A stretch of DNA of 64,000 nucleotides. It comes from Chlorokybus atmophyticus (Eukaryota; Plantae; Mesostigma and Chlorokybus algae). The notes under the pieces were generated by a model. The model saw nothing but the letters and a program-made list of their open reading frames with translations, had not been told where the DNA came from and searched no databases. The stretch lies in the NCBI GenBank assembly GCA_009103225.1, contig RHPI01003488.1, positions 62,001-126,000 on the forward strand, read 5' to 3'. Positions 2,356 to 26,361 of this stretch are shown piece after piece. Made by a program: the position numbers and the translations under genes. The first letter of the stretch is position 1, and every line of letters starts with the position of its first letter.

Positions 2356-4792
2356 TCACCAGTGCAGTTTATAGCTACCAAGCTGCATGAGAGGATGTAC
2401 AAAGTACGCGCCTAGGCTGAATATAACGATACCCAAGTAAGGTACCCGCAAGAACTCCTTGTAATAATCTTTTGGAAGCTGTTGCCGTCCCTGCATATAA
2501 GCACACATGACACATGATTGACGCGGAAGGGAACAGCTGGGACAGAACGAAACCAGAGCTTTCTTACAACTTTCTTACATCCAGAATGGCCGCGAATGGC
2601 ACGATGCTTGTGCGAGCTTTTACCGCCTGAAATGCATCACCGTACTTTGCCTGCAGAGGGTCATGACTGTCATAAACCCACAGATACACCACAATAGCAA
2701 TTGACGGTGTATCTTGATGCAATGGTGTCCACCGATGTGCTAATTGATACCCATGCAGAACAAAGGTGAGCTACGAGCTGCTGCGGCTCACCTCAACACG
2801 GCGGTCTCCGTGCCAAACACCAAACACATGGTGCGCCAGCAGCCCCGCAGAGGTGGTCAACATAAACGAATTTCCGATCCAAAGAGTATGTGCTAAGCAC
2901 CATATCAACTGCCCGAACATCTGCAAAACCATGAGGAGTTACTACCCTGTTCATTCAACCCATTATGACAGCAGATACTGAAATAGGGACCAAACATCAT
3001 ATCAACATTAGCGAACCTGAGGGTGCCTAGTGATGCGCATAACACCAGTCTCCCACATGTGCAGCTTTGGCTTGTCCACTGCAGCAACCTACGCCAGATT
3101 GGTATGTTAGTTCAACCCCAGGTACACCTTCTTGATCAGACAAAACGGCAAGGCAGGTCACAGTACCTCCAGCAGGTTGAAAGTGGATGGATACAAGAAG
3201 AAGAATGAAATGAATGATGCAATCCATACGCCAGCGTGGATAGCGGCTGACTCCCGCACAGACCAGAGCTGAACTCCGTCATAGCGATGGTTGATGAAAA
3301 ACGCTACTGCAGCTATAGCCAATGGCAAACTAACCACCCTGTAAGAGCACACGAATCAGCATGGTGAAAAGATCAGACTGCCTACAGTATGTCAACACCG
3401 CTGCAATGTATCACCTCTCACCCGAATAGCACTCGGTATGCGCGGGCGCCAATCAGCTTCTCGCCTGAAGCTCGCAGACCAGCCAGGCCACTATGTGCTA
3501 TTGCAAAGACGATAAGAATCAACAACATTGCCACCTGCACAGCACTTGATCAATAAACATGAAGGCCTATCACGAACAAAGGAGACTCAACACCTTCTTA
3601 GTAGCGGCATAGCGTCCACACAGTATGCTGTGCGCACCTCACTGTTGTCGTTTGCCAATGACTCCATTGAGCGTATGAACGGCGTCCCGAGACCATGTTG
3701 CGGTTCAAGCCAAAGGAACCATGTGGCAGCTGTGACAGTGCCCAGTACACCAAAGAAGTACAGCCAAGCCCTGTGATCGAGCACGCGAGTTGTCGCGACA
3801 TGGCAGTCAAGACGCCCAAGACACAAGTTGAGACTTGATTGCTTACGACACACAACAACCTACACACAACAAACCCATGAAGCCAGTGAGGCGGCGTGAC
3901 ATGCAACATGGCGGTTGGTCTATAAAGTGCTACCACTAATCAACACCCCAGGTCAGGGTCTTGTCGCCATTGTGGGTTGTGTCTAGCACGCCAGGCAAAA
4001 ACATCAGTGACTGGAAAGGTAGTAAAAACCTGACCTCAAGCAGCCATTGCGTTTACTCACATAGTTACAGTCATGACTAGTGTACACGGCATGCAGTTCA
4101 TGTAGCGGTCGCCCTGCCACTCGGCTAGCCTCGCACGAGGCGACCGCTACATAATGCAGCAACAGTTTATCTTATTGGAGGCCGTGCATCAACAGCACAA
4201 GAGCAGAAACACAACTGTTAAGCACAGCTTATTCAAAAAGGACCATATGCAAAATCTGTGCGCGTTGCATTCAAATCATTTAAACACATAGGGTGGTTTA
4301 AGTCAAGCGGTAACTGAGCTTTCTGGCAAAAAAGCTGCCATGACGCGAGTTGGTAAACTTCAACTGATGCATGACAACTAGCTTGTTGTGACAACTGTGT
4401 AATAATAGCAATGTGCGTAACACTCGGCTTAACCTTGCATGCACACATGCAGTGGCAATGGTTGTGTTACAGCAAGAAGGTGTATGACACCCACACCTGC
4501 CAGACTGAGCTTCTGTCGAGAACACAGCCGCATCCTCGCCCACCAGCAAATCCTTCTTCACATCCGCGTCCACAACCTCTCGCCCACTCACCGAGCACAC
4601 AGTCGGCAAGCGCCTTGACCCTGAACACCCCCTAACCCTAGCAGGAGATGCCAGCACCAGCGGCACACGTGCCGGCCGAGCACAGCTCAGAGCGTCATGA
4701 CGTCTCTGAGGCCTATGTTCCACAACGACCTTACTCCTTGTCAGAACGGCACATGCCGGCAACGCAGCCGTCCCCAGCGCCGCCGCCGGCAT
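2356..4792 (-). CDS. Z-ISO: 15-cis-zeta-carotene isomerase (NnrU-type), plastid-targeted, multi-exon
   Basis: Transit-peptide-like N-terminus, then [71 protein letters not shown], and C-terminus [18 protein letters not shown]...[13 protein letters not shown] (TGA at 2356-2358). An alternative in-frame ATG is at 4819. Confidence 0.92.
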
Positions 4793-4922
4793 CCTCGCCG
4801 CCCCTGTGCTCAGCCACATCACCACTGAGCACAGCAGACAACCCTAATTCTGCTTTCGATCCGGGTAGCAGAATGCCACCCGACCGGAACAGGTTCGAAA
4901 AACCCCGTTTGAGGTTGTTTGC

Positions 4923-4988
4923 GCGGGAAAAACGGGCAAAAAACTGCGCCAAACTCGCGGCAGCATTTGTAATATACAAATTTGGCGG
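4923..4988. promoter_or_regulatory. Cluster of three E2F-consensus sites in the Z-ISO/MET1 divergent promoter
   Basis: GCGGGAAA 4923-4930 (rc TTTCCCGC), GCGCCAAA 4946-4953 (rc TTTGGCGC) and TTTGGCGG 4981-4988, 126-191 bp upstream of the MET1 ATG. Confidence 0.6.
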
Positions 4989-5113
4989 TAAGCTACAGAG
5001 CTCAGAGGCGAGTGCATGCAGGCGGCGGCGGCGGCGTAGTTGGCAGTGTGTTTGAGGTCGGGGGCGAGGTGGGTGGAGTGAGCGGGGCTAGGGGGCTGGT
5101 GTCTGCTCCACCC

Positions 5114-8100
5114 ATGCCTGGGCTGACGAGTGACGCCTGGGCCGACTGGACCACCTCCGGCGGACGGGTGGAGGAGAAGAGGCGCCCCAACTCCAACAAT
5201 GTGGACCGCAAGTTTGTTGCCAGCACAGGTTAGGGTTCAGATCATGCGAGGACCAGGTCATCATCATCATCACCACCTAACAGTCTCTAGTACGCAGTCA
5301 GCCTGGTAGCGTGCATGCATGCTGGGCCTTGACCAACTTGCAGCCTCGCTTGGCCGCACGAGCAATACGGCCTACCTACGAGAGAATTGCAAGCAGATGT
5401 TACCTAAAATTGATTGCGTAATGCTTTTTTTGTTTTTTTGTTTTTTTTNNNNNNNNNNNNNNNNNNNNNNNNNNNNNNNNNNNNNNNNNNNNNNNNNNNN
5501 NNNNNNNNNNNNNNNNNNNNNNNNNNNNNNNNNNNNNNNNNNNNNNNNNNNNNNNNNNNNNNNNNNNNNNNNNNNNNNNNNNNNNNNGAAGGGGGGGGGG
5601 GGCAGCGTATATAGCCTGGAACAGTTGACATGCAAAGCACAGAAGCATGCCAGTTGTTGGAAAAACGCTCTGGCAGTTGTTTGTTGTGCAGCTGGCAACG
5701 ATTCATTTGCTCATGTAATCTATTATAGGCATCACCAAACGATTATGGTATTACAATTGTCGCTTAACAAGCGACAATTGTATCAAGCGCTTGTCAAATA
5801 TCAAGCTGTCATCTTAATGCTTTGAAGTCAAACTGCTTTCTTGTGGCATTGCAGGCGAGGTGTTTCGCAGCTGGAAGGAGTGCCAGCGGTTTCTGGAGAC
5901 AGGCAATAAACGAGAACTCAAAGAGCAGCTGCCTGACAAGAAGGAGGACAGCCTGGCACAGGTGAACACAGACACAAGCGAATATCCGGTGAAACAGCCC
6001 ACTGAGAAACAGAATGGTTCAGTGGCTCAGCTGCAGCCTGCCAGCAACCTTAAGAGACATGCGCGCGACAAAAGCAGAAGTAATGCACCAAGTGCCGACA
6101 AGAAGGTATTCAGTGCAATGCCCTTGTTATGCTCATGGTTCTATGCGTGTAGTTCATGTTGAAAGCGTGCATTGATGTAGACCAATCCTGTGTAATAACA
6201 GGTGAAGCTGGAGTCGTCACGCGCGCAGCGTGCACCAGCCACAGTGTATGCTGAAGAGGATGATACAGAGGAAGCATATGATGAGGATTTCATCACTGTC
6301 ATCAAGACCCGCACAGCTGAAAGCGAAGAGATGGCCCTCACCATGACAACCAGTGGGGCGCCTGCAAGCAAAGTGCAGCACAGAAATGTCGTTGACTTGA
6401 CGCTCCATGATGACAATGGCCGCGTGCAGCCTCCGGAAGCAATTACTGACATGGCCTTGTTCCTGTCTGGTAAGTGTGTTAACATGTTGTGTTGACTCTG
6501 ACCCTGTAGACAAGGGACAGAGTGCCGCACGACAACATTATTGCGATTCACTCATGCCAAATAACCCTCTGCTACTGGCGTTTTCTCTCTTGTGCATGTG
6601 CAGCAATAATTCTTCCAGAAGATAGCTTGAACAAGTCAAAGGGTGCATGGTGCAATGGCTTCGGTCCAGTTGAAGGCTGGTACGTGGACAATTACCTAAT
6701 GAGCAGCAGGCTTTGTGCGCAATGCTCTGAGCAAGAGTTCTAACCGTTACCCACAGGTATATTGACGGCTACGATGAAGCCGAGCCTCGCATAGTGTTCA
6801 CAACAACCTCAGCTGAGTACACAGCACAGAAACCTTCAGCGCGATTCCGCAAGATACTCACCAGATTAAAGGCCGGAGCTTCTGTTTGCCATGCGGTGTA
6901 CAAGCTCCTCTCACCATCGGCTTTGCCTAAGGGTGATCCAGACCTCAGCATAGACGACCTCTTAGTAAAGCTTGCCAGAGGCTCTGGTAAGCTTGACGTG
7001 CAACACACAATGCTCTGTCTTTGAGTGATTACCACATAGCAGAGCTGGGCCAAGGCTGATTACTATTGACTGTCCAATCTTGTGCACAGCAACAAAAGCC
7101 AAGCTGTCGAGGGAAACAGTGCTCGAGCATGGCAGGTTTCTATTGCAGCAGCTGCGTGACTTAGACCAGTCCGATGACGGGCAGGAGGAAGTGCAACTCG
7201 CATCACTGCCAGCCGTGTCAGCACTGGAAGCTATGTTGGTTGCGCGCGAAGCTGACCAAAGTGCTATCCATGTTTACAAGAAGCCTGGCGCTCTTGTCAT
7301 CAAGGATAAAAAAGACGGCACAAATGCGAGCACCAGCAGTGAAGAAGAGGACGATGACCTCAAGCTGGCCCGCAAGTTGCAGGTGTGCTCGTGTGGTGGT
7401 ACTGCTTCCTCTAGTGAATGCTGCACTTGTTTGTCACTTGCACAGTGCACGAGCCATTCACAGGCAGCAGAACTGTAATAAATGAGCGCTGGGCAGGGCT
7501 TATTGAATCCTTGCGCAGGCACAAGAAGAAGCGAAACTGGCAGGGCAAGCCAAGAAGTATACAAAACAGCTTGCATCATACAATAAGTCCAAGGCAGGCA
7601 CCTATATCAAGATGAACGAAAGCGAGCTGGCGGATGACTACCCGCCCCCAGCATACTACATGAAGACAGATGAGGAAGCGGATGAGTACATGCTTTTTGA
7701 GGACTACGCTGAAGAACTCCTGCCAGAGGAGCTGCCCAGGCACCAGCTAGACGACTTTGCCTTCTACAACATGGATGGTCAGCGCGTAGATGCGTGTGCA
7801 TGTGTACATGTGGTGAGTTGTGTCATTGCAGGTCTAATCTAGCTTGACCCTTCCAGGTCGCATGGTGTCACTAGAGCTGCTGCCTATGTGGAGTGGCGTT
7901 GACCCAGACATTGAGTTGTACGGGTCCGGCAACATGACGCTAGGACGAGGGGAAGATGATTGGAGCGGTGGAGAGGAGGTTGAACCAGCTTCGGCAACCA
8001 CTGCAACAGGTGAACCCAGGCAGCAATCCTTTACACAAACTAGAGTTGGGTTGCGCATGTGCTTGGCCACTGCATGCACACTGATGCAAGCGTGGCACAG

Positions 8101-11100
8101 TTGTTCTTCCTCTGTCGATGGCTAACCTCGGTTAACCACCACTCTTGTGTTTGTAGGCGTGTCAACAACAATAGCAACAGAAGCGGTTGGATCCAGCAGT
8201 GGTTGTTCTACAGACGCAGGTAGCTGCGTGATCAACAGTGTGAGTTCTGGTGTGCAACTCGCACTCATCATTTCATAGCACTTGGCTTGACATTGTGTTC
8301 TGTAGCACCGCAAGCAGCGGAAGGTCATGCGGGCATGCGTGTCTTCCTGAGCGCAATCAAGGAGTGGGTTGTAGAGTTTGGTGCCGGCATGGTGTTCGTG
8401 ACGGTATGTAACACTGCGACACACTTGTCTGCAATGCACAATGGCTACATGGCACAATCTGAAGCGTCTACAAGGTTGCATTAGCGACTGACTGGAACAC
8501 TTATCACCTTTGTACTGCGTAGGTGCGCACGGATGGAGCATGGTACCGCCTTGGCAAATCTTCTCCTCAGTACCAAGGCTGGTATGCCCCGGTGATCAAG
8601 ACAGCGAGAGTGGCAGTGCAGTGCATCACTGCCTTAAAAGACGAGGCGCGCGTTGCACGCCTGAGCTTCGGGCAAATGGCCCAGCATCTGTCCAAGATGG
8701 ACTCAACCGCAGCTGCATTCATCTCCAACAAGGTATGCCTCAACCAGAAGGCGCAGACTCACTGCTAGATACGTGACACTTCACGTTGACCCCTTCTCTC
8801 CCCTCCACAGGTGGCAGAGGTGGAACGTCTGCTGATTGTGCATGGCCAAATCATCCTTAACGTATTCAGGACCTTTCCCGACCAGACAGTCCAACGCTGC
8901 CAGTTTGTGACAACGCTGCAAGAACGCATGCTGCAGCGCAGCCACACAAAGCTTACGCAAACAAAGAAACAGGTGAATAAAAATAATGCTGTCTTCACTA
9001 AGCGCATGCGTGTTATTGCTGGCTGAAGGATTGGAATTCACAAAGAGTGGTAGCTGCTCAATGTGTCCACCACGCTGTTGTATTTGCAACACTCGTCATT
9101 CAGGTGGTTGTGAGGCGTACGCGCAATGCGAACCCGCTGGCCGGCAAGGCTCCCGATGCCTACAAGCGCAAGCCCATGCGTGCCACCATGACTCCACTTG
9201 TGCACAGAGTATTTGCAAATTATTTTGCCCAAGGCAAAGTTGATGAGACGGTAAGCCCACTCCACTGCCGCATTGCAGAAAAGTTATGCCCTGTTAGAAC
9301 CAATGCGATGATTATTGTGGAGACTGGCCGTTGTGATTGACAACTTTTGCATCAGGCACCTGTCGCGGCAGACGCTGTCGAGGAAGAAGAAGCTCTGGAC
9401 GACAAAGGCGACGATGATGCTGAGGATGAGGACAGCGTTGCTGCACCACCCACAGCCCCATCACCAGCCAGGAACAAGGGTAAAAAGCGCAAGGTAGGAT
9501 AAGCTTGTGCATGCGTTAAGGCTCTCACGTACGCTCCATCTGGGGAAGAAAGGATGTTGTGCATGTATTCATGCACAGCCGGTCACAGGTGCAGGCACAA
9601 GACGCGCAGCTGCTAGGCAAACCAACTGGGGATGAGAAGCTGTACACACGTGCGAGTGTTCATGGGGTAGAGATTGCAGCCGGCGATGCAGTTCACTTGC
9701 CAATGGATGATGAGGATGGTGCAATGCAAAGATACGGCGTGGTGCAGTACTTCGTCCTTGATGAGGTATGTTCATCCGCGGACAACCCTGCTATCTGAAT
9801 TCAGAGGTTGATGATGGATGCGTATTTACGTTGCGTCGGATGCAAAACCATCCACCACATACACAGGAGCGAACTCCCACAGCTGCTGTGAAACGGTTGG
9901 CTTTTGGTCATGAAACAGTTCTGAGCGAGGCTGCAGATGAAAGGGAACTGTTCTTGACAGAGGCGACGGCCGATTATGACCTTGCAGACATCACGGCGTG
10001 TAACAATGTCAAGCGCCGGTATCGCCCTTGGGGGCTGGATTACCTCAAGTCCAACGCTGCGTTGGACGAGAAGGTTAAGGAAGAGGCGGAACAAAGGGGT
10101 GCTGGCGAAGAGCTGAGTTATTACTACCAATTTGCATATTATGCGCATCGAGGTGGCTTCTTCACGCTGCCGAGCATGAGTGATGTCATTGAGAACTACC
10201 AACTGAGGCAAGAAGAGGAGAAGTTTGGCTCTGCGCAGCGCATTGCTGTCAAAGCTGACGAGTTCACAATAAAGGGGCACACATACACCATTGGTGACTT
10301 TGTCTTCATTGCTGCGGATACGTTCCAAGATATGAAGAAAGCGAGCAAAGGGGGTGATAATGCAAAGGACTGCAGCAAGGGCAGGTGGAACATTGGCTCG
10401 CAAGCGTATCCTATCGTTGAGATCTTGCATCTTATCATGCCGGCTAAGGGAGTGGCATCTGCAAGCAAGCTGAAAGTGCGAAGGTATTTCCGCGGCGAGG
10501 ACATAAGTGACGCGCGTGCTTACACCGGTGACATCCGCGAGGTACAGTCACGAATGGTGTGAGACTTCAATTGGCTTTGATGGCGGTGGTTGTTACTCCT
10601 GACGGCATGTTATTTTCCTGAACAAGCACTGTTGCAATGCAGGTGTACTTTACGGAGATGACAGCAGACGTTGGCATTGACGCTGTTGAAGGTCCATGCG
10701 TAGTTCAGCGAAAAGAAGCTGTCTTCGACTTGGATGTAAGTGCTTTGTCGGGTCTAATGCTTCTTGTTGCACACCACCTCTGCTGCTGCTCATCATATGG
10801 CTCTTGACCCTGCAGGCTTTCCTAGAAGAACACAACACGTTTCACTGCAGCTACAAGTTCAACCCAGCTGATGAATCCATTCACAAGGTGCATCCACAGC
10901 CACTGCATCAAGTTGGCATCATAACAGCCACAAACTACACTGGAATTAGCTGCATGCACACGTTGACAGCAACTGTGTCACACGTCCAGCTTTTAACATC
11001 CATCCTGTTGTGTTCTGCTTGCATGCGATTATGATTGTAGTTGTTGACACATCCTGCCACAGTTGGACATCACGCACACATTTGCTAAGAGTGCAAGCAA

Positions 11101-13622
11101 CCCGGCTGGTGCTGGCAAGGGCAAAGCGCTGGCCAGGAGCATCAGCAACAAGGGCAAGGCTGTTGTGACTGACGAGGACAACGACCGGCACCGGCTTGCC
11201 ACCATGGACATCTTTGCCGGGTGTGGTGGACTGTCTGAGGGACTGCAGCAATCAGGTGGTTGTTATGATTAGGATGTATTAGAGGGACACACAAAACTGC
11301 ATGCTCATGCATGCACACACACGCACATAGCCTGATTTCTTCATCTCTGTTGTTTGCTGTATGTCAGTTGACCCTGACATTGGTCTCTTCAGGGGTTACA
11401 CGCACCAAGTGGGCTGTAGAGTACGACTCGGCAGCAGCAGACGCATTCCGCTTGAACAATCCGGATGCAGCAATGTTTTGCGAGAACTGCAACGTCGTGC
11501 TTAGGTAAGTTTAACAGGTCCATTTAAGATGCTGGGTCGAAAAGCACCAAACGACTGGCATTCACCTAAGGTCTGATTCGCAGGCGACTGATGGAAAAGG
11601 GCGGTGCATCTGACTCTTGCATGTCAACACCAGAAGCAGATGCAGGTACACATTGCTAAGCCGGCAAGTCGACGACGTGTGCGGTATCAGGCATTGACAT
11701 CACCTGAACACCTGTGGCATCTTCTGTGCAGGTGCTGCAGCCATGTCCGAAGCAGATGCAGCGAGGCTCCCGTCTCCTGGTGAGGTAGATTTCATAAATG
11801 GTGGACCACCATGCCAGGTAAGCCAAGCAAGCGAACTGTTCCAAAGTATCACCTGCACTTGTCCGACGAGACATAACCGTGGCAGGGGTATTAGACTTGC
11901 TGCGCTCCTTGTGTTGATTTGTGGTTCCACTTGTGTTAGCAATCTCATCATGCGCTGCACAGGGCTTTTCTGGCATGAACCGCTTCAATTCGGGCACTTG
12001 GAGCAGAGTGCAGTGCGAGATGGTTCTGGCGTTCTTGTCGTTCGCCGACTACCTGCGGCCTCGCTTCTTTCTACTGGAGAATGTCCGCAACTTCGTTACG
12101 CACAACAAGTCTCAAATCTTCCGCCTCACGCTGCGCGCTCTCCTGGAGATGGGCTACCAGGTGAGTGTGACAGAGTTGCATGTGTGCTGTTGTTGAAGGA
12201 TGTTTATAGCACAGTGTCGCTCATTGACGTCGCTGCCAGGTGCGCTTTGCAATCTTGCAAGCTGGACACTATGGCGTGGCCCAGAGCAGGAAAAGAACCA
12301 TCATCTGGGCGGCTGCGCCAGATGAGACCCTCCCAGAGTGGCCCGAGCCGATGCACGTCTTCCACAGCACGCAACTATCAGTGCCACTGAGTGAAGGACA
12401 AAGGTAAAGGGATTCTTGCAACCATCCAGGCATTCAAGTGTTATGTCGTGTCATTGCCAACGACAAGCCTTGCGATGTAATGCAGGTACAGTGCAGTGCG
12501 CGAGTCCGCACGCGGGGCGCCGCTTCGAGCTGTCACTGTGAAAGATGCTATTGCTGATTTGCCGCCCGTTGGAAATGGAGCCGACAAGGAAGTACTTGAG
12601 GTGACGCGCTGATCATAGTGTGTTGCTTAAGTGTGGACTTTGTCGATTGCCAAAGCGACTGACGCACTTACTTTGTGTGCAGTATCAAGGAGAGCCAGTA
12701 TCGTTCTTTCAAAAAAGGATACGCAACGGTGAAACAGTGCTTCGAGACCACATAGCCAAGGCGATGAATGAGCTGAACTACCTGCGCTGCCAGAATGTCC
12801 CTGTGCGCCCGCAACCAACGCCGTGCTTCTACGATTGGAGAGACCTGCAGGAGCTACCTGATGACAGACGGATGGTAAACACAACTGTCTTGTGGCCAAG
12901 ATCTTGCAGTCTGCTCGGCATGTATGTGTGTCTGTGCGCGCGTGCGGGCATGAGTGTGGGTGAGCGTGTGATCTTGCGCGTGCGTGTATGGCCGCACAAT
13001 CTGGTTGCCGGGTACAAGTAGCCAACACAACAACCGTGTCGCGTACTCTCAGGTGACATTGTCTGACGGGAAGAAGGTGGACCTTGTGCCTTGGTGTCTC
13101 CCCAACACGGCAGCGAAGCACAACCAGTGGAAGGGACTGTTCGGGCGTCTGGACTGGGATGGCAACTTCCCCACGGCCATCACCGACCCGCAGCCCATGG
13201 GCAAGGTCGGCATGTGCTTCCACCCAGATCAGCACCGCATCGTCACCGTGCGCGAGTGCGCCCGGGCACAGGTGGGTGATGATTGTTGAGATGTTGTTGT
13301 GTTGGGGTTTTGTGGTTTGTGCGTCAAGTCAATTCAGCCGTGAAGTTGCTCCTTCTTGCCTATAGAGACTTGCCTTTTCATCTGACCTACATTGATTGAT
13401 GTAGTGGAGCAGACTGCCAACGTCGTGCAGTAAAACTTGCGCATTGATAGTCAGCAGCAGTGTTGCTAAGTACGTCTTTCATAAACTCGGCAGGGCTTTC
13501 CTGATTCTTTCAAGTTCTCCGGCACCATTCAGAACAAGCACAGGCAGATTGGCAACGCCGTTCCGCCCCCGCTCGCGTACGCACTGGGCAAAATGCTGAA
13601 GAAGGTGGTGAGCCAGATATAA
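5114..13622 (+). CDS. MET1: DNA (cytosine-5)-methyltransferase 1, plant MET1 type: N-terminal MBD-like domain, 2 RFTS, 2 BAH, C5-MTase
   Basis: RFTS1 ([11 protein letters not shown]...LFLS|AIILP...GFGPVEGW|YIDGYD), [11 protein letters not shown]...[19 protein letters not shown] linker, RFTS2, BAH (RELFL; [10 protein letters not shown]), motif [13 protein letters not shown], motif [43 protein letters not shown]...[12 protein letters not shown]; stop TAA at 13620-13622. Intron 1 contains an N gap (5449-5587). Confidence 0.95.
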
Positions 13623-14177: not shown

Positions 14178-15491
14178 TCAATTCGTGTTTATTGAGCTGA
14201 CAATCTCAATGTCATCGAACACCGCAAGAGTAATCGCCCTTGAGGCGCCCGCAGATGCCGACAAGCCCGCTAAGAGTTGCGACCTGATGAACAACAAGAC
14301 AAGGTGATTACACACACACGCGCACGCGCACGCACAGGCACACGCACACGCACACGCACGCGCACACGCACACGCACACATACCCTATATGGAATGGTGC
14401 GAAGATCATCGCTAGGTCAAGCCACCCCACGCCATCCTCCGAGTACGACGCCGTGAACGTGTTGGCGCTCTCGTCTGCTCTCAGCCTCAGCCACACGGGG
14501 AAGCCCACGACGACATTCCCAACCAACGTGATCACCTGCACGAATGAACGAATATATCACACGGGTGCCAACGGGCTGTGATGGGCTGTGTTGCGGTTTC
14601 CAACACTGCGCAGCAACAATCACCTGCATAGTGTTGCCGTCGCTGCTGTCGCCCCCTGCCCGCGTCGTCACGCCGAGCGTGCCTCTGCTTGTTATGAAGG
14701 CGTGGGCGTTGGCCTCGGTGCCGCCTGTGCCGGGAGAGACACGGAGCATCACGCCGGCGGCGGAGGGGATGTTGGAGGAAGGGGAGGCGGCAGATACGCT
14801 GTAGGAGACAGTCAGGTTAGCACAAGGAAGCTGTGTGTAGTGCGTCTCCTTCTCTGCGCGTGCGTGCGTGCGCGCGTGCATGCGCATGTGTGCACGAGCG
14901 CACGTGTACTCAGTCTGTGTAAATGTGTCCCTGTGGACACCTGTGTCTGTGTGCCCGCATGCAAGTAGACTCATGTGTGCATGTGTACACATGTGTGTTC
15001 GTCACGCATACCTCACGATTTTGGCGCTCACTTCAGCCACCACAACTCCATCCCCCAGTTGCTCATACACATAATGAAACTGATCTTGATACCCCGCCAC
15101 TCCTGACCCACCCGACGTCACGTACACAAGTCCATCGCTTCCCAACGCGGCTCCACCGGGATAGTTATTGAAATAAGACGCCACTTCTGCTGAGATTAAA
15201 GAGGAGGGGAGGGCTGTTTCTATCGCTGTGTAATAAGCAGTGTACGTGTAGCCGGTGGCGCGTGATAATGCGACACTATGCTCGCGGGTACCGCCGTCAC
15301 TCCAACCCACCCACGTGTAGCGCACGTTGGAAGGTGAGTCGGTTTGGCTTGCGGGTGCACCGACGTTGTAGGCGGAGTTTAAGGATCCGGTCAAATCCAA
15401 CCTACCACTCGCACTGTACACATGTGTAAGTGAGTAAGCTGATTGTGCCATCACAACAATATCGTAAATGTGTGCTTGTGTGTACACACAA

Positions 15492-15537
<46 letters not shown>

Positions 15538-18500
15538 TCCATACCCTGCCGTGAAGCCTTGTGAGTACACAGGTGCGGGTATAGGCAGCGAGAGCACCAC
15601 GTAAGGCACTGTCGACGCATCAGGAGGAGGAGGAGGAGGTGATAGTGTGGGTGGAGGAGGAGGAGAAGGTGAGGGTGGGGGAGGTGAGGGTGGAGGGGGT
15701 GAAGGAGAAGGTGGAGGGGGTGAAGGTGGAGGGGGTGAAGGAGAAGGGGGAGGAGGGGGAGGAGGGGGAGAGCGTGGAGGTGGAGGAGGGGGAGAGCGAG
15801 GGGGTGGAGGTGGAGGTGGAGAAGGCGATGATGTTGTTGTTGTCGTGATGGCCAAGTTGCCGAAACTCGCTTGCGTGACGGTATTCACCAACCCGGCCGC
15901 CACACCCGCTCCCGCAACACACGCACCCGTCTCACACTTCAACGCAACAGCCGTGGGAGCCGCATTACTCCCCCAACCCACCCACGTGTTGCCACCATCA
16001 ACACTGTACCTCGCCGCAACGCTTCCCGCAGTATATCTCAACCCCACCCACACGGGGAGTGACACAGTTGTTGTTGTGGATGTGGCGGTGGTGGACCCGC
16101 CGACAACACGTCTGTAACCGAACACGAGCTTGCGTGTGGAGGAGGAGTAGAACAACGTGGCGGCGATGGACGTGGGGGAGAGGGGGGAGGAACCGGAACG
16201 GATGGAGATGAGGGCGGAGGATTGGGAGCCGAGGGTGGAGGAGATGGAGGAGAGGACGTCAACCACGCCGGAGGTGGAGACGTCCCTGAGGGTAAAGCTT
16301 ATCGGTATGCAGCTGTACGCAACGCACGCATGTGTGCGTTTCCATGTAAATGCACGTGTGTCTAGGCACGTGCATGCGCAAGCGCATAGGCAAAATTGTG
16401 CGTGCGCGTGCATCTGCGTAGCGTGCAGGTCTGCGCGCTTACGCGTGCACGTATGTGGATGCGCATGTGCGCAAGTGTATGTGCTCGCGAGTGCGTGCCT
16501 CCTACATGTGCAATGCTTCCGTTGCAGCAACATGCCATATATCGTATCAACACGCCATCCCTTACTTGTAAACCAGATACATCGAGTCCGCGGTCCCCCC
16601 CGCTCCCATCCCCGTCCCCGTGACCGTATGCGTATCGGTCCTCTTATCCCACCACGCCCCTCCTTGCGCACCAAACCCACCATACGGCGTGCCAACATAC
16701 GCCGCGTTCAGAGTGGATGCGAGTGTCCCGTTGCCAGACGAGGGCGTGTCGATGGCGTACATCGCGGTATAAGTTGTGCGTTGGGTGGGCGTGGGAGTGT
16801 CGGGAACGATCACCTCGTGGGATTGGGGGAGGGCGTCGGACCAACCGGCGAAAAGGTAGGGGATGCCGGCGTTGACGGTCTGGAGAAAGACAGGGTGGGT
16901 GTGTATGAGTGCGTGGGTGTGGGTGGGTGGGTGTGCATGTGCGTGCATATCGCTCTCTGTGCATGCGTGCGTGCCGTATGTGCCCACGCTCACGTGCCCA
17001 TGTACGTGTATGATATGTTGGCGCGCGTGCATGTGTACCTGTGTGCGCACTTGTACACTTGTGCGCATGCACACCCATGCACGTGCATGCGTGCATGCGT
17101 GCGTGCGCGCGCGAGCACGCATGCAAACGTTCATTCCCTCCCAGAGACCAACCCAACATGCACTCATACTACGACCCCCACCCACCCACCCACCCACCCA
17201 CATACCCACACACTCACCGTGGCGCTCGCAGAAATATAAAAGCTGCTCCCAATCACCGCCTGTCTCGGTATGCTCCCGCCGCTCGTCGGCGTCCTGCTAA
17301 ACAGGTTCGCGACGCTGGCCCCGACGGGCCCGCTGGTGACCGAGACCGTGGACAGACGGGGGAGGAGCGTGCGCGTGACGGAGCGGGAGAAGAGGGCGGA
17401 GGTGGTGACGGTGAGCTCGAGGACGAGAGCCGGGTAGAAGTCGTGGTCGGGGGCGAGGAGGGTGAAGGAAGAGACGTTGGAGGCTTGCTGGGGGGGAGAG
17501 GAGAGAGGGGAAGTGCTGTTAGACGTGTTTGTGTGCATGTGTGCGTGCGAGCGCACGTGCACACACACGCACACGCGCATGCGCGCGGGTGTGCATGCAC
17601 AGGTGCGGGTTACAAACTCAGTCTACGGACTGTTCTGTCCAGGAGTACAATACGAGCTTTGCGCGAGACCAGCGTGTGTGCATGCAGGTGAGAGCGTGTT
17701 TGTGCTCGCTTGCGTGCTTGAGTACGTGTGCATCAATGCATGCCTGTACGTGCGCTTGTGCATGCATGTGCCATCTATTGGTACCAACGCTGATTAGATT
17801 TGAAACAACCGGACAGTTGACTTCGCCATGAAATGGATAGCCAAAGGCATCAGTCATGCATCTCCAAGTCCTTACCAAATAGTCGTGCGAGTGGCACGTG
17901 TCGAGCGCGGGACTCGCGCAATGCAGCACGGTGACGTCCCAGGACAATACGTCCGTGTTGGGGTGTGATCCCACGCCCGCTAAAGACAGCGCCTGACCCA
18001 CCACCCACGTCGTACCGTCGGCCGGAGAGGTGATCGCGGGGGAGGGGAGGTCGGCCGTAGACGCGGCAACCTGAGGAGAGAGAGGGAAGGAGTGATGTCG
18101 AGCACATATGTGCACATGGGCACGAACATGCGCAGGGACGCACGTGTGCATGAGTGCGCAAGTGCGTATGAACATCCCAAGCGTGCATTTGTACACACTT
18201 GTAAACGCGTGCATGTGCATACGTGCATAGGTGCGTGCGCTCGCACTCGTACGCATAGACCTACGAGTGTGTTGACATACATACACATCCGCGTGGGCGA
18301 ACGCACGCTCTTGCACTTGTGTGCGCATGTTTGTACATGTGTACTCGTAGATAGCACTGCATGACAACACCAACAACCCCTGACCTGTATGAGTTTGGTA
18401 TCCGTCCGTTTCTGCCCCCCCGGTCCCGTGATAGTGAGCGTCGCCGTAAATGTCCCTGGCTGGGCATATGTGTTGAAGGTGGCGACATTGGTGGAGTCCG

Positions 18501-21500
18501 CTTTGTTCCTATTGCTTGCATCAAAGTCCCACGCCCTTGTCACGACCACCCCGGGCGACACAAACGATGCCGAGGAATCGAAATTGACGTTGAGGGGCGC
18601 CACGCCTTGGACGCCGCCATCATCTGTAATGACAGCGCCCTGGTGTAGAAAACATTGCTTTGGCCAACTAGGCCACGGTAGCTAAAGTCGCTATCATGGG
18701 AGGTCGTGTAACGCTTGTTAACGACCGAGAAAACCTTGAGGGCTGAGTTACCTGGTCGCTGGAGTTAGCAGCTATGCGGGCGTCAAAGTACTGTTCCCCA
18801 GAGTGAAGCAAGCGGTAAATCGCCCCCGGCAACGCATTCCCGTACTCGATGACGTACACTCCCGCGCCGTCGGACTTGACGTCGACGACCCCGATGTCGT
18901 CCAGGAGGGTGAAGGCGAGGGTGGGGTCGGGGAGACCCGTAGAGGAGGAGAGGGGGAGGAGCCAGAGGCAACGGACGCTAGGGGGGAGAGGGGGAGGGTG
19001 GGTGGGGTGAGGGGTGAGGGAGTGAGAGTGAGAGTGAGAGTGCAAATGAAGGCCGAGTGCGAGTGAGTGGGTGAGTAGGAGTGTGAGTGTGAGTGTGCGC
19101 ACGCATACTCGAACACATACACACTTTCCCACACATAAGCGTGCGTAGGCGTGCGTTGATGTGTGCGGGGTATATGGTCAATGGCTGCACTCATCAGCGA
19201 TGATCAAGTGTACCTGTAGTCACCCATGAGCAGAGCGCCTTGGTACTGCGTGAACACGACAACAGGTCAGAGTGGTGATGGGCGTATGCCTATGCCTATG
19301 CATGCATGCATGCGGAGGGGAGCTGATGGAGGATGCAACCCCAACTAGCAAAAGGAAGGAAGCTTACTTGGCTGGGCCAAGAGGATACGTTGACAAAATG
19401 CAGAGCGGTGATCGATCCCGCACTCTGCACCTTGCCCTGACTCGCCCTCGTGCAACCCGTCCTACACACACACACGCACCAAGAGTCAGTTCACTGTGTG
19501 TGTCTCCCAATCTACAAACTGCGCTCTCTCTCTCGTGTTAGCGTGCCTGAAGTTTGCTGGCAGGTTGCCGTGCTGGTACTGGAAGAACGGCGGCAGCGCG
19601 AGGACGCCGTTGCGCTTGGCGGTGATGTCGTTGCAGAGGGTCGTGTTGAGGGACTGGTACTGGGACTGGGCGGACTTGCCCTCAAAGCACGGCCAGCCTA
19701 CAAGTGAATGAGTGAGTGGTTGTGAGGATGAGTGAGCGCGCACGCGCAAAGAGAAAGAGTGAGTGATTGGAGAATGGCGTGCGCGTGTGGGTGTGGGTGT
19801 GTGGGCTGGTCTACGCACGCATGCCTTTGTGTGCACGTGCGCCTGTGTCTCTGTGTGCGCGCATGAGCGTGGGTGTGCATGCGTGTCACGCGCAGCATAA
19901 GTTGAGGGGATGCAATTGAGTAGCGATCAGACACGTGCGCAACACACGTACCAAAGTTGGGTGCGCCGCCGAGCGTGGCTCTGTTCGCCGTCGGGTACGT
20001 CAACCTGATCCACTACAATCGGTCAAACCCCCACCCCAACAACAACACCAACAACCCCCACCCTCCCACCTCCCCCCACCTGTTGATCTCCTCCCACGTG
20101 TTCCACCCGACGTCCCCTATCCACACCTCGACGCTCCCGTCGTTCTTGGGGTTCATCCTCCAGGTGGTGGCGAAGGGGTTGCGGAGCCCGTAGGCCACGA
20201 CCGCGCGCTTGTCGGTGGACCAGGAGGGGCCGCCGGGGAGGGAGGGGGAGGACTTGTAGTCCGGGTTGCCGGGGTGGGGACTGTGGGTGGGACATTGGTC
20301 AATCTCACAAAGTGGGTGGAACCATGACATACCATGACTAGCGGTGTTGTTGAACACATGCGCGTGTGTGCGTGCATGAGAGTGTGCATGCGCGTTCATG
20401 GCAGTGACACTTGCACGCAGTGTCGCACACATTGTGGGTAGGATGCGCGTGTTCAATGTGTATGCATGACACATGTTGTGTATGCGACACAAGCACACAC
20501 ACATTGCAACACTGACCCTACTACCACAACAACGCGTACTTTCCGTTGAGGTCGAGGCGCACGAGCGTCCCCCCAAACTGTCCTTTCCACGGCCCCTGCA
20601 CACGTACGAGACATTAAGCAAGCGCATCACTCCTCTCAACCCACTGTTACAGTCTCAAAACTGAGCACACAAACACGCACCGGGTCCCGCGTCATGTAAT
20701 GGAGTGACCTGAACGACCCCCCCTCGGCCGTGTTGGGACTAAGGTTGTCGCCCGACACGCCCGGGTAGTCGCCGCACGCGTTGCCGCGGTTGCCGTAGTC
20801 GACGGAATTCGGATCAGCACCTGAGTGTGTGCAAGTGGGTGTGCGTGCGTGCGTGGGTGTCTGCGTGAAAGTCTGCGAATATGCTTGTGTGCGCGCATGT
20901 TCACTTGGTTGTGTATGTGTCACACATAATGTGACACATAGAGCACGCGCGCGCGAGTGCTCGTGTATGCGCTCATACATGCATGTGCAAGCACGTATGT
21001 GAGATCTCGCGTGCGTGCGTGCGTCCGTGCGTGCGTGCGTCCGTGCGTGCGTGCGTGCGTCTACGAGCGTGTGTCTCATACACATCCCACTCGTACCATC
21101 CCCCGCCGTCAGATACAGCGCTCCCGATGTTGGATCATAGAACACGTTCCCGGTCTGATGCGTGCTGGACTCGAAGCACGCCCCCATGTTCAGCACGACG
21201 GTCTGTTCCACAACTGTGTTCTTGCGATCCACCCGCGCCCGTACCACGCGCCGGTTCGCCAAGCAACCCGACGACAGGCACGTCGCGTTGCCGACCACAT
21301 AGGGAGTCGTGTACTGGAGGAAGACGTAGAGGTCGGTAGAGGAAGGGACGGGGGTGACTGCGAGAGAGAGAGAGATGTGGGTGTGAGGGTGTGTGGGTGT
21401 GGGTGTGTCATGATGTGTGTGTATGACACTTAGTTGTGACACTGCAGCCAGGACAAGCACTACTGTTGCTAGGGGGAATGCATGAGTGTACTGGTACTGT

Positions 21501-24871: not shown

Positions 24872-26361
24872 TGTGAGGTATCATGTTTTCCATGACTTGT
24901 GGCGGATATCGGCAAGCTGCGAGTTTGCCGCAGATATCGACCGGCCCAGGGCCAGTCTGGAAGACGCCAGAAAACGGAGGGCCAGTCGAGAAGGGCTAGA
25001 CCAGATTTCTGGAAGGGCCTGGCGCCAAGTAGTATAACTTGACCATATAAGCAGCGAATGAGGAGATCTTTGGTGCGTCGGCAAGGTCTAGAAGTGTGCT
25101 ACAAGATTCTGCAAGAATATCTTAGCTTCTAATTCCGTCTAGCGCTAGAATCGTCTAGACAGTAGCATGTGCAGACTGGTAGGTATAAAAGTGACATTCT
25201 ACAATTTGCAATACAACCTCTAGCTCCCTAGTTTCTTGTGTGCAAGCCTGGTGGTGGTTAGCAGGGGTTGCTAGCGTGTGTCCACTAGTGTGTGCTTGCT
25301 TGTGTGACGATCCAAGGCGCTACACAAGTCGGTGTGTAGCTTCGAGCGCAGGCGCGTGCGTACGCGAGTGGCGGGGCGCGCGTGTGTACTTGGCAGAGGG
25401 GGCAAGGTTCCGATGTGAATACCGTGTCTTGGTGAGAGGCTTGTTAATTGGAGCAACTCACAGGTGACAAGGCACGAGCACCGTCACACTGATATCGGAG
25501 CACGGTTTATGAAGGTGAGAGAGGAAGTGTGTGGGCGTTTACGCTTTTCATTCAAAAGCGGAATTTAGTGTGTTAGTGGAGATGGAGGATGCTCGCATGG
25601 AAGAGCTTCAAGCTGCCATCTTAGCATTGAGGGAAGAGCTTCATCACACTCAAGCGGCGGCACAAGCACAACGCGAGGCGTATGAGCATGCGATGGCGCG
25701 TGTACAAGTTTCCATGGCATCAAGCTCACGCGTGCATGTGAAGGTGCCAAAGCCCAAGTCATTCAAGGGTCAACGTGATGGAGATACAGTATAATGGATT
25801 TTCCAAGTATGGTCTTAGTTGAAGCTCACGAAGGTGCCCACGCATCTGCACGTGGAGGTTGCAGCGACACTGCTTGAAGGTGCAGCACTTGTATGGTGGA
25901 GACATCGATGTACGCGTGTTGCAAGTGGGTTGGCGCTACCATTGACCACCATGGAAGAGTTGGCACTGGAGGTCAGGCATCAATCTGTTCCCGTTGAGAG
26001 CGTGAAGGCCGCACGCGACAAGCTTGCAGACCTTGTGCAAATGGGGTCGATAATGGCGTACACGGCTGCGTTTCAGCGATTGGTGATGTCCATACCCAAT
26101 ATGACCGAGGAGGAGCGGCTGGACAGGTATGCACGTGGTTTAGACCCTTTGGGCGGTAAAGAAGTGGAGCTACGGGACCCGAAGACACTCGCGGAGGCTA
26201 TACGCATCGCGGAGCGTCTCGACACGTTGTACTTCAAGTCCACCACAAGAAACACTGATTGGAGGCAAAGGCATGGTGATCAGCCTCGGGGAGGCTTTCA
26301 ACATGTGTGGAGACGAGGAGAACCAAGTTTAGCGCTTGCCAACAGCGCGATACGCGGGTGA
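24872..26361 (+). mobile_element. Truncated Ty3/gypsy LTR retrotransposon: putative 5' LTR 24872-25488, PBS 25490-25501, pseudogenised gag 25582-26361
   Basis: TGTGA...TCACA termini; PBS-like TGATATCGGAGC (cf. tRNAiMet TGGTATCAGAGC); gag-type motifs KVPKPKSFKG, LLEGAALVWW, LVQMGSIMAYTAAFQRL, RYARGL, PKTLAEAIRIAERLD with in-frame stops. No pol or 3' LTR is seen, and the LTR start is tentative. Confidence 0.8.

Follow-up and report, generated by a model that had tools for sequence, protein, structure and literature searches.

CG methylation is inherited chiefly through the action of MET1/DNMT1, whose usual domain plan comprises RFTS, BAH and methyltransferase (MTase) domains, with a CXXC domain added in animals. 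The latter is an autoinhibitory zinc finger, situated ahead of the BAH domains, that recognizes unmethylated CpG. Methyl-CpG-binding domains (MBDs) are found in other proteins: Arabidopsis MBD5 and MBD6 are small stand-alone readers, and MBD4 (a glycosylase), SETDB1/2 (H3K9 methyltransferase) and the TAM domains of BAZ2A/B have the MBD/TAM fold in cis with an enzyme. Unlike MET1, none of the last group is a DNA methyltransferase. In mammals, DNMT1 reportedly associates with MeCP2 and with MBD2/3. We analyzed a 64,000-nt stretch of DNA (the window) from the streptophyte alga Chlorokybus atmophyticus (GenBank assembly GCA_009103225.1, contig RHPI01003488.1, positions 62,001 to 126,000 of the forward strand), which holds a MET1/DNMT1 gene. 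The first two exons of this gene would code for a small MBD/TAM-fold domain of divergent sequence (residues ~10–58) in the same polypeptide as the RFTS-RFTS-BAH-BAH-C5-MTase series.

Compared with described systems, the Chlorokybus protein has the same RFTS-RFTS-BAH-BAH-MTase order as angiosperm and moss MET1 (Arabidopsis-type, Physcomitrium MET1A) but differs from those sampled by its N-terminal MBD module. The CXXC domain of animal DNMT1 is likewise built into a maintenance enzyme; however, its fold is unrelated to the MBD and its methyl preference is the opposite of that expected of an MBD. Among solved structures, Arabidopsis MBD5/MBD6 (PDB 7fef, 7d8k, 7feo) have in common with the Chlorokybus module an upstream Trp, an R.VE strand, an Arg-Asp-Arg set and a G..FRS hairpin. 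The Chlorokybus module differs from them in its fusion to a writer, in the loss of the GW Trp and of a conserved Tyr, and in a shorter loop L1.

The N-terminal domain of Chlorokybus MET1

The gene at 5114..13622 (+ strand, ATG to TAA, ~30 exons, 1649 aa) was delimited by tblastn, Pfam and spliced RNA contigs, and it is the Chlorokybus MET1 orthologue. A public protein model (EukProt EP00898, JGI Chlat1 4955 / Chrsp32S00378, 1649 aa; P0001 in our set), retrieved by a search with the large BAH exon, maps to the window exon by exon, residues 1–1649 falling at 5114–13619 and followed by a TAA stop at 13620–13622. The features expected of a MET1 are all present in this one protein: RFTS (Pfam DNMT1-RFD, 4.6e-42, two stretches), tandem BAH (5.7e-19, two stretches) and a C-terminal C5 methylase (DNA_methylase, 9.5e-50). 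The catalytic region is 65–70% identical to land-plant MET1. The N-terminal 500 residues are divergent, which explains why a word search with the whole protein returned just one distant relative.

Exon 1 (5114..5228, +) extends from Met1 to the first base of the Gly39 codon and encodes an N-terminal helix, strands 1–2 and the region of the first Arg finger and the Asp. Its ATG at 5114 is the first in-frame ATG downstream of a stop at 4970. Intron 1 (5229..5854, +; GT..AG, phase 1) opens with the donor G/GTTAGG after 5228 and closes with the acceptor ttgcag/GC ahead of 5855, so that the Gly39 codon is split as G/GC and the two exons are in phase. Exon 2 (5855..6105, +) supplies the remainder of Gly39 through Lys122; within it lie the codons of the hairpin, of the FRS Arg finger and of a helix, followed by a low-complexity basic/acidic linker, and it ends at 6105 rather than at 6107. 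Intron 2 (6106..6201, +; 96 nt, GT..AG) separates it from exon 3 (6202..6469, +), which carries the linker into the first RFTS region. The two parts of the MBD-like domain lie at 5141..5228 (+, residues ~10–39, with W12, G16, G17, V19, N26, R32 and A36, which are invariant among relatives, and Chlorokybus R24 and D31) and at 5855..5913 (+, residues 39–58, with G39, E40, F42, R43 and the family-specific helix start W45-K46-x-C48). A first-pass annotation, made from the letters of the window, had joined exon 1 to exon 2 in phase across the split codon and continued the frame into exon 3 at 6202. The joined translation agrees exactly with the peptide that it gave, the public model has the identical exon 1–exon 2 join and N-terminus, and intron 2 is seen spliced out in an RNA contig.

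A domain of about 45 residues is expected to give weak individual E-values, and this is the case here. With the joined 68-residue peptide, the only Pfam match was PF01429 (MBD), with E-values of 0.04–0.046 and 13.8–13.9 bits, aligning protein residues 18–57 to profile positions 16–58 of 77. A search of 177,635 PDB sequences with phmmer gave Arabidopsis MBD6 as the two best matches (E 0.03, residues 11–58). In a feature search of the ESM Atlas, 46 of the 100 nearest clusters were MBD families, the best scoring 0.85 with 185 shared features; by the tool's own account about nine in ten matches in this range are true, although it is uncalibrated for parts of proteins. When a profile of six MET1 N-termini (see below) was compared with the PDB, MBDs made up 12 of the 14 matches, and each of the six N-termini matched PF01429.

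We also predicted the structure from an alignment of the six MET1 N-termini only, free of any MBD sequence and without templates. The AlphaFold model had a pLDDT of 80–85 over residues 11–50, with predicted strands at 18–23, 30–35 and 41–42 and a helix at 45–63 (strand-strand-hairpin-helix). Without an alignment, residues 1–130 reached a pLDDT of 58.7, too low for a fold search. When the model was compared with 350,542 PDB chains by Foldseek, the top 34 matches were all MBD/TAM domains with a root-mean-square deviation (rmsd) of ~2 Å over 40–44 columns; MBD4, SETDB1/2 and BAZ2A/B are among the fold matches. The best was AtMBD6 (2.1 Å, 42 columns, 38% identity, probability 1.0). As modeled, the domain has the three- to four-stranded twisted sheet packed on a C-terminal helix that defines the MBD fold, and the structure prediction that the first-pass annotation had put forward as a check thus points the same way. 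Four independent methods (Pfam, PDB sequences, ESM features and predicted structure) agree on an MBD. We therefore hold it highly probable that the Chlorokybus N-terminus is an MBD fused to MET1, as the first-pass annotation had proposed in describing an intron-split MBD-type domain ahead of RFTS-RFTS-BAH-BAH-MTase.

Orthologues in ferns and gymnosperms

A blastp search of residues 1–70 against the MET1 proteins that we had fetched found the N-termini of two of them, P0093 (residues 9–53, 39% identity) and P0128 (residues 11–54, 40% identity), with E ~1e-6, a value that refers to a small local database. The first is Cryptomeria japonica DNA (cytosine-5)-methyltransferase 1B (XP_057863874.2). 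The second is a transcript-derived protein that is 92% identical to Adiantum in the module region and hence comes from a fern. A region search with residues 1–60 of P0128 added Adiantum nelumboides L7F22_016941 (P0215), a further transcript-derived protein (P0214) and Ginkgo Gb_24436 (P0216). Like Chlorokybus, the Adiantum, Ginkgo and Cryptomeria proteins have a module of ~45 residues at the extreme N-terminus. The six N-termini are invariant at 13 columns (W12, G16, G17, V19, N26, R32, A36, G39, E40, F42, W45, K46 and C48), which gives the signature W..GG.V...N..R...A..GE.F..WK.C. Several of these columns, notably the WK.C helix start, lie outside the MBD consensus. Since such columns are common to all six, the modules form one family of one origin rather than the products of repeated captures.

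When N-termini alone were scanned against PF01429, the curated cutoff of 21 bits was exceeded in Ginkgo (24.7 bits) and in Cryptomeria (23.0 bits), and the ferns scored 18 bits. In the full-length Ginkgo and Cryptomeria proteins the matching stretches (residues ~22–58 in both) drop below the cutoff, to 19.1 and 17.9 bits respectively, which is why the module is missed by automatic annotation and why surveys of DNMT architecture that rely on Pfam will have passed it over. In the ferns, two mRNA contigs, each from a separate run, encode the whole 1670-aa protein as a single open reading frame (ORF), whose ATG is preceded by an in-frame stop three codons upstream. The MBD-MET1 fusion is thereby shown at the transcript level in ferns.

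A hidden Markov model of the module was run over 216 fetched proteins. It matched only the Chlorokybus, fern, Ginkgo and Cryptomeria MET1s and near-identical members of their clusters. Within this set it found no module in ~100 angiosperm MET1s (Amborella and Nymphaea included), in two mosses, two lycophytes and three Closterium models, or in several metagenome-derived, probably chlorophyte, DNMT1s; late-starting models with truncated first exons might conceal some copies. PF01429 was likewise absent from the 120 best land-plant MET1 matches scanned at full length. A metagenome scan with the module alignment produced 141 pattern matches, none of them confirmed, and a cluster search of the AlphaFold DB returned MBD proteins and no further DNMTs. 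A second Ginkgo MET1 model, Gb_34186 (P0106, beginning MGRKKSK), is without the module and is either a paralogue that lost it or a truncated model. Three metagenome and Closterium DNMT1 models (P0063, P0012 and P0073) have N-terminal matches to Pfam EF1_GNE, HisKA and Response_reg, which probably reflect merged gene models and not true fusions.

The simplest and most likely reading of this distribution, as far as it was sampled, is that the fusion arose once, ahead of the divergence of Chlorokybophyceae from the remaining streptophytes, and that the module was lost several times afterwards. The module is thus probably an ancient feature of the plant lineage that was lost in flowering plants. 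This overturns two points of the first-pass annotation: its premise of a land-plant MET1 without an MBD fails for ferns and gymnosperms, given the Adiantum, Ginkgo and Cryptomeria proteins, and what it took for a possibly new architecture in an alga is an old streptophyte trait shared with those plants. In the literature on DNMT and MBD architectures that we covered, which excludes many subscription papers, an MBD in DNMT1/MET1 is undescribed. MET1 and the MBD fold are each known; their combination appears to be new.

Transcript support and alternative readings of the module

Of the sequencing runs aligned to the window, X1 (labelled as possible RNA) holds spliced contigs, and X2 extends over introns, as expected of DNA. 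GT..AG joints were seen in X1 at 6105>6202, 6985>7089, 7378>7515, 9249>9355 and 9491>9587. The coverage of MET1 in X1 is thin (depth 1–6). The Chlorokybus MET1 gene is expressed and spliced downstream of exon 2. Upstream of this point, intron 1 contains an assembly gap, a run of N at 5449–5587 bordered by a T-rich (poly-T) run and a poly-G run; it lies 220 nt past the donor and 267 nt short of the acceptor. As the gap is wholly intronic, its true length has no effect on the reading frame. No reads span it in the runs aligned. The exon 1–exon 2 junction is accordingly best described as a probable one, backed by the public gene model and by ungapped homology, not by RNA.

Could exon 1 lie outside the MET1 transcript, as a prediction artefact or through a scaffold mis-join at the gap, with the MBD likeness a product of chance? 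None of the contigs of the runs aligned joins exon 1 to exon 2, and the sole RNA contig on exon 1 (5106–5258, 153 nt, depth 2.5), although it shows that the region is transcribed, continues unspliced for 30 nt into intron 1; both facts count against the proposed N-terminus, and the gap between the two exons leaves room for a mis-join. On the other hand, Chlorokybus residues F34–C48, which straddle the join, have ungapped counterparts, equally far from the start Met, in the MET1 N-termini of the fern, Ginkgo and the conifer, including the continuous fern ORFs in which a single mRNA encodes the joined module. The gap therefore does not appear to conceal an exon. The exons themselves also resist separation: the exon 1 frame meets a stop immediately past the donor, and the exon 2 frame, which has a stop 13 codons upstream of its acceptor, is open but contains no in-frame Met, the next Met occurring only in exon 3. 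We consider an artefactual exon 1 very improbable and close to refuted. A comparable objection can be raised against the fold. For so small a domain VIA-align discriminates poorly: its Z scores for the MBD are just 3–4.6, and with the N-terminal helix included it gives Z of 4.0–4.3 to the double-stranded RNA-binding domains (dsRBDs) of ADAR2, PKR and DCL4, matching the MBD scores. The module might on this basis be an RNA-binding domain of the dsRBD-like alpha-beta-beta-beta-alpha type instead of an MBD, and the Chlorokybus score of 13.8 bits, under the Pfam cutoff, weakens the MBD assignment further. For the HMMER comparison with Pfam, proposed at first pass, the outcome was therefore divided, with PF01429 the sole match and its score too low. 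However, the dsRBD matches have 2–12% identity and an rmsd of 3–5 Å, against 21–36% and 1.6–2.9 Å for MBDs; the dsrm family appeared in no Pfam scan, MBD in six of six members; and the leading 34 Foldseek matches include no fold other than MBD/TAM. We rejected the dsRBD reading on the low identity, the high rmsd and the missing dsrm profile, and give it only a very slight chance.

Methyl-CpG contacts and the proposed function of the module

We took the equivalences of contact residues from HMMER alignments to AtMBD6 and MBD2. The first Arg finger (MeCP2 R111) corresponds to Chlorokybus R24 and to Ala in the ferns, Ginkgo and Cryptomeria. MeCP2 D121 corresponds to Chlorokybus D31 and to Arg in the other three groups, and MeCP2 Y123 to Chlorokybus K33, to Thr in the ferns and Cryptomeria and to Ala in Ginkgo. 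The second Arg finger (MeCP2 R133) is R43 in Chlorokybus, Arg in the ferns and Ginkgo and Tyr in Cryptomeria. Among the six members, only Chlorokybus keeps the Arg-Asp-Arg triad that contacts methylated CpG, and in its R24-D31-R43 series the spacing from the Asp to the second Arg is 12, as in MBD2/MeCP2. The alignments bear out how these positions had been read at first pass, namely both Arg positions and the Asp kept, the GW Trp and the Tyr substituted. Of the traits of a methyl-CpG reader, the Chlorokybus domain thus has the Arg fingers and the Asp, and is without the conserved Tyr and a full-length L1. The cores of all family members are net basic (+2 to +5). Judged by these residues, the Chlorokybus copy appears to be the nearest to a working methyl-CpG reader within the family.

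We suggest that the Chlorokybus domain may bind CG-containing DNA, probably favoring the methylated form to some degree, and would keep MET1 on chromatin that is already methylated, as a reader-writer tether in cis. The first-pass annotation had proposed that such reading could drive feedback methylation. Such a tether would work beside the RFTS/UHRF1-type route and not in its place. Its logic is comparable to that of the CMT3 chromodomain and of the RFTS/ubiquitin route of DNMT1, and the fusion could be seen as a single-chain version of the contact between DNMT1 and MBD proteins. The base composition of the window is consistent with CG methylation with local exceptions, although this is indirect: the observed/expected ratio of CpG is 0.60–0.88 in most 4-kb bins and that of TpG and CpA ~1.5, with a CpG ratio of 1.0 at 16–20 kb, where a GC-rich gene with abundant TG/CA microsatellites lies. 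We put the probability of the whole statement (a divergent MBD fused to MET1 in an old fusion, binding CG DNA with a methyl preference and acting as a cis tether) at about 0.5. For methyl-CG reading by the Chlorokybus domain taken by itself, the residues suggest a chance just short of even.

Several observations weigh against methyl reading, and they would be explained by an MBD fold that is methyl-blind, retained because it binds DNA irrespective of methylation or because it serves to dock a protein partner or a different domain of MET1, with the Chlorokybus Arg-Asp-Arg as an ancestral leftover. MBD3, the MBDs of SETDB1/2 and some plant MBDs are models for an MBD fold without methyl reading. 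Chlorokybus itself has Lys33 in place of the Tyr that assists in methyl reading and Gly17 in place of the GW Trp, and its L1 (R24 to D31) has 7 residues versus 10 in MBD2/MeCP2. Unlike Chlorokybus, Adiantum, Ginkgo and Cryptomeria carry Ala for the first Arg finger and Arg for the Asp, their loop is one residue shorter still, and Cryptomeria has in addition exchanged the second Arg for Tyr. Because contact residues are lost in the fern and gymnosperm copies, the canonical set of methylated-CG contacts would not be what selection kept in the family; the invariant positions are instead W12, the GG pair, N26, R32, E40 and W45-K46-x-C48, and net basic cores suit generic DNA binding. Yet Chlorokybus retains three charged contact residues at the canonical Asp-to-Arg spacing, the best solved match is AtMBD6, a binder of methylated CG, and the fusion partner is the very enzyme that makes this mark. 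A methyl-blind module is the main rival reading, to which we would assign a considerable chance, somewhat below even.

A bolder extension of the tether proposal is that the ancestral streptophyte MET1 was self-reading. Its own MBD would have recognized methylated CG and provided built-in positive feedback, which Chlorokybus would retain, ferns and gymnosperms would have in degenerate form, and mosses, lycophytes and angiosperms would have lost as VIM/UHRF1-type recruitment took over. We regard this scenario as rather unlikely on present evidence. Whichever function applies, an N-terminal MBD-type module would alter the architecture that is inferred for the ancestral plant MET1. The module extends from one of the earliest-branching streptophyte algae to ferns and gymnosperms and, being absent from model plants, has been invisible to work on Arabidopsis, rice and Physcomitrium. 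It raises the testable question of whether a maintenance methyltransferase can be targeted by its own mark without an SRA-domain adaptor, for which nature offers a series: the full Arg-Asp-Arg in Chlorokybus, one Arg in ferns and Ginkgo, no Arg in Cryptomeria and no domain in angiosperms.

Some further features of the window were recorded. In exon 3, a 10-residue stretch encoded within 6202–6260 (residues ~123–140) resembles by eye the basic motif (R/K)(R/M)PKRAA(A/T/S), which directly precedes the first RFTS in all of the land-plant MET1 N-termini aligned; the stretch could represent another short conserved motif, besides the module. Close upstream of MET1, at 4700–4797, lies the end of a transcript expressed at a very high level, with a depth of 472 in X1 and of 195 in a third run, X3, versus 1–6 for MET1. 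X3 mismatches 3 of 62 letters there and may represent another Chlorokybus strain or species. On both strands of 14300–21500, many microsatellites of the (TG/CA)n type appear as CVCVCV-type ORFs, together with a Pro/Ser-rich PPPPSPPPP stretch. Finally, two adjoining ORFs of 87 and 180 aa at 25531–26361 on the + strand resemble, on visual inspection, a Gag-type region of a retrotransposon.

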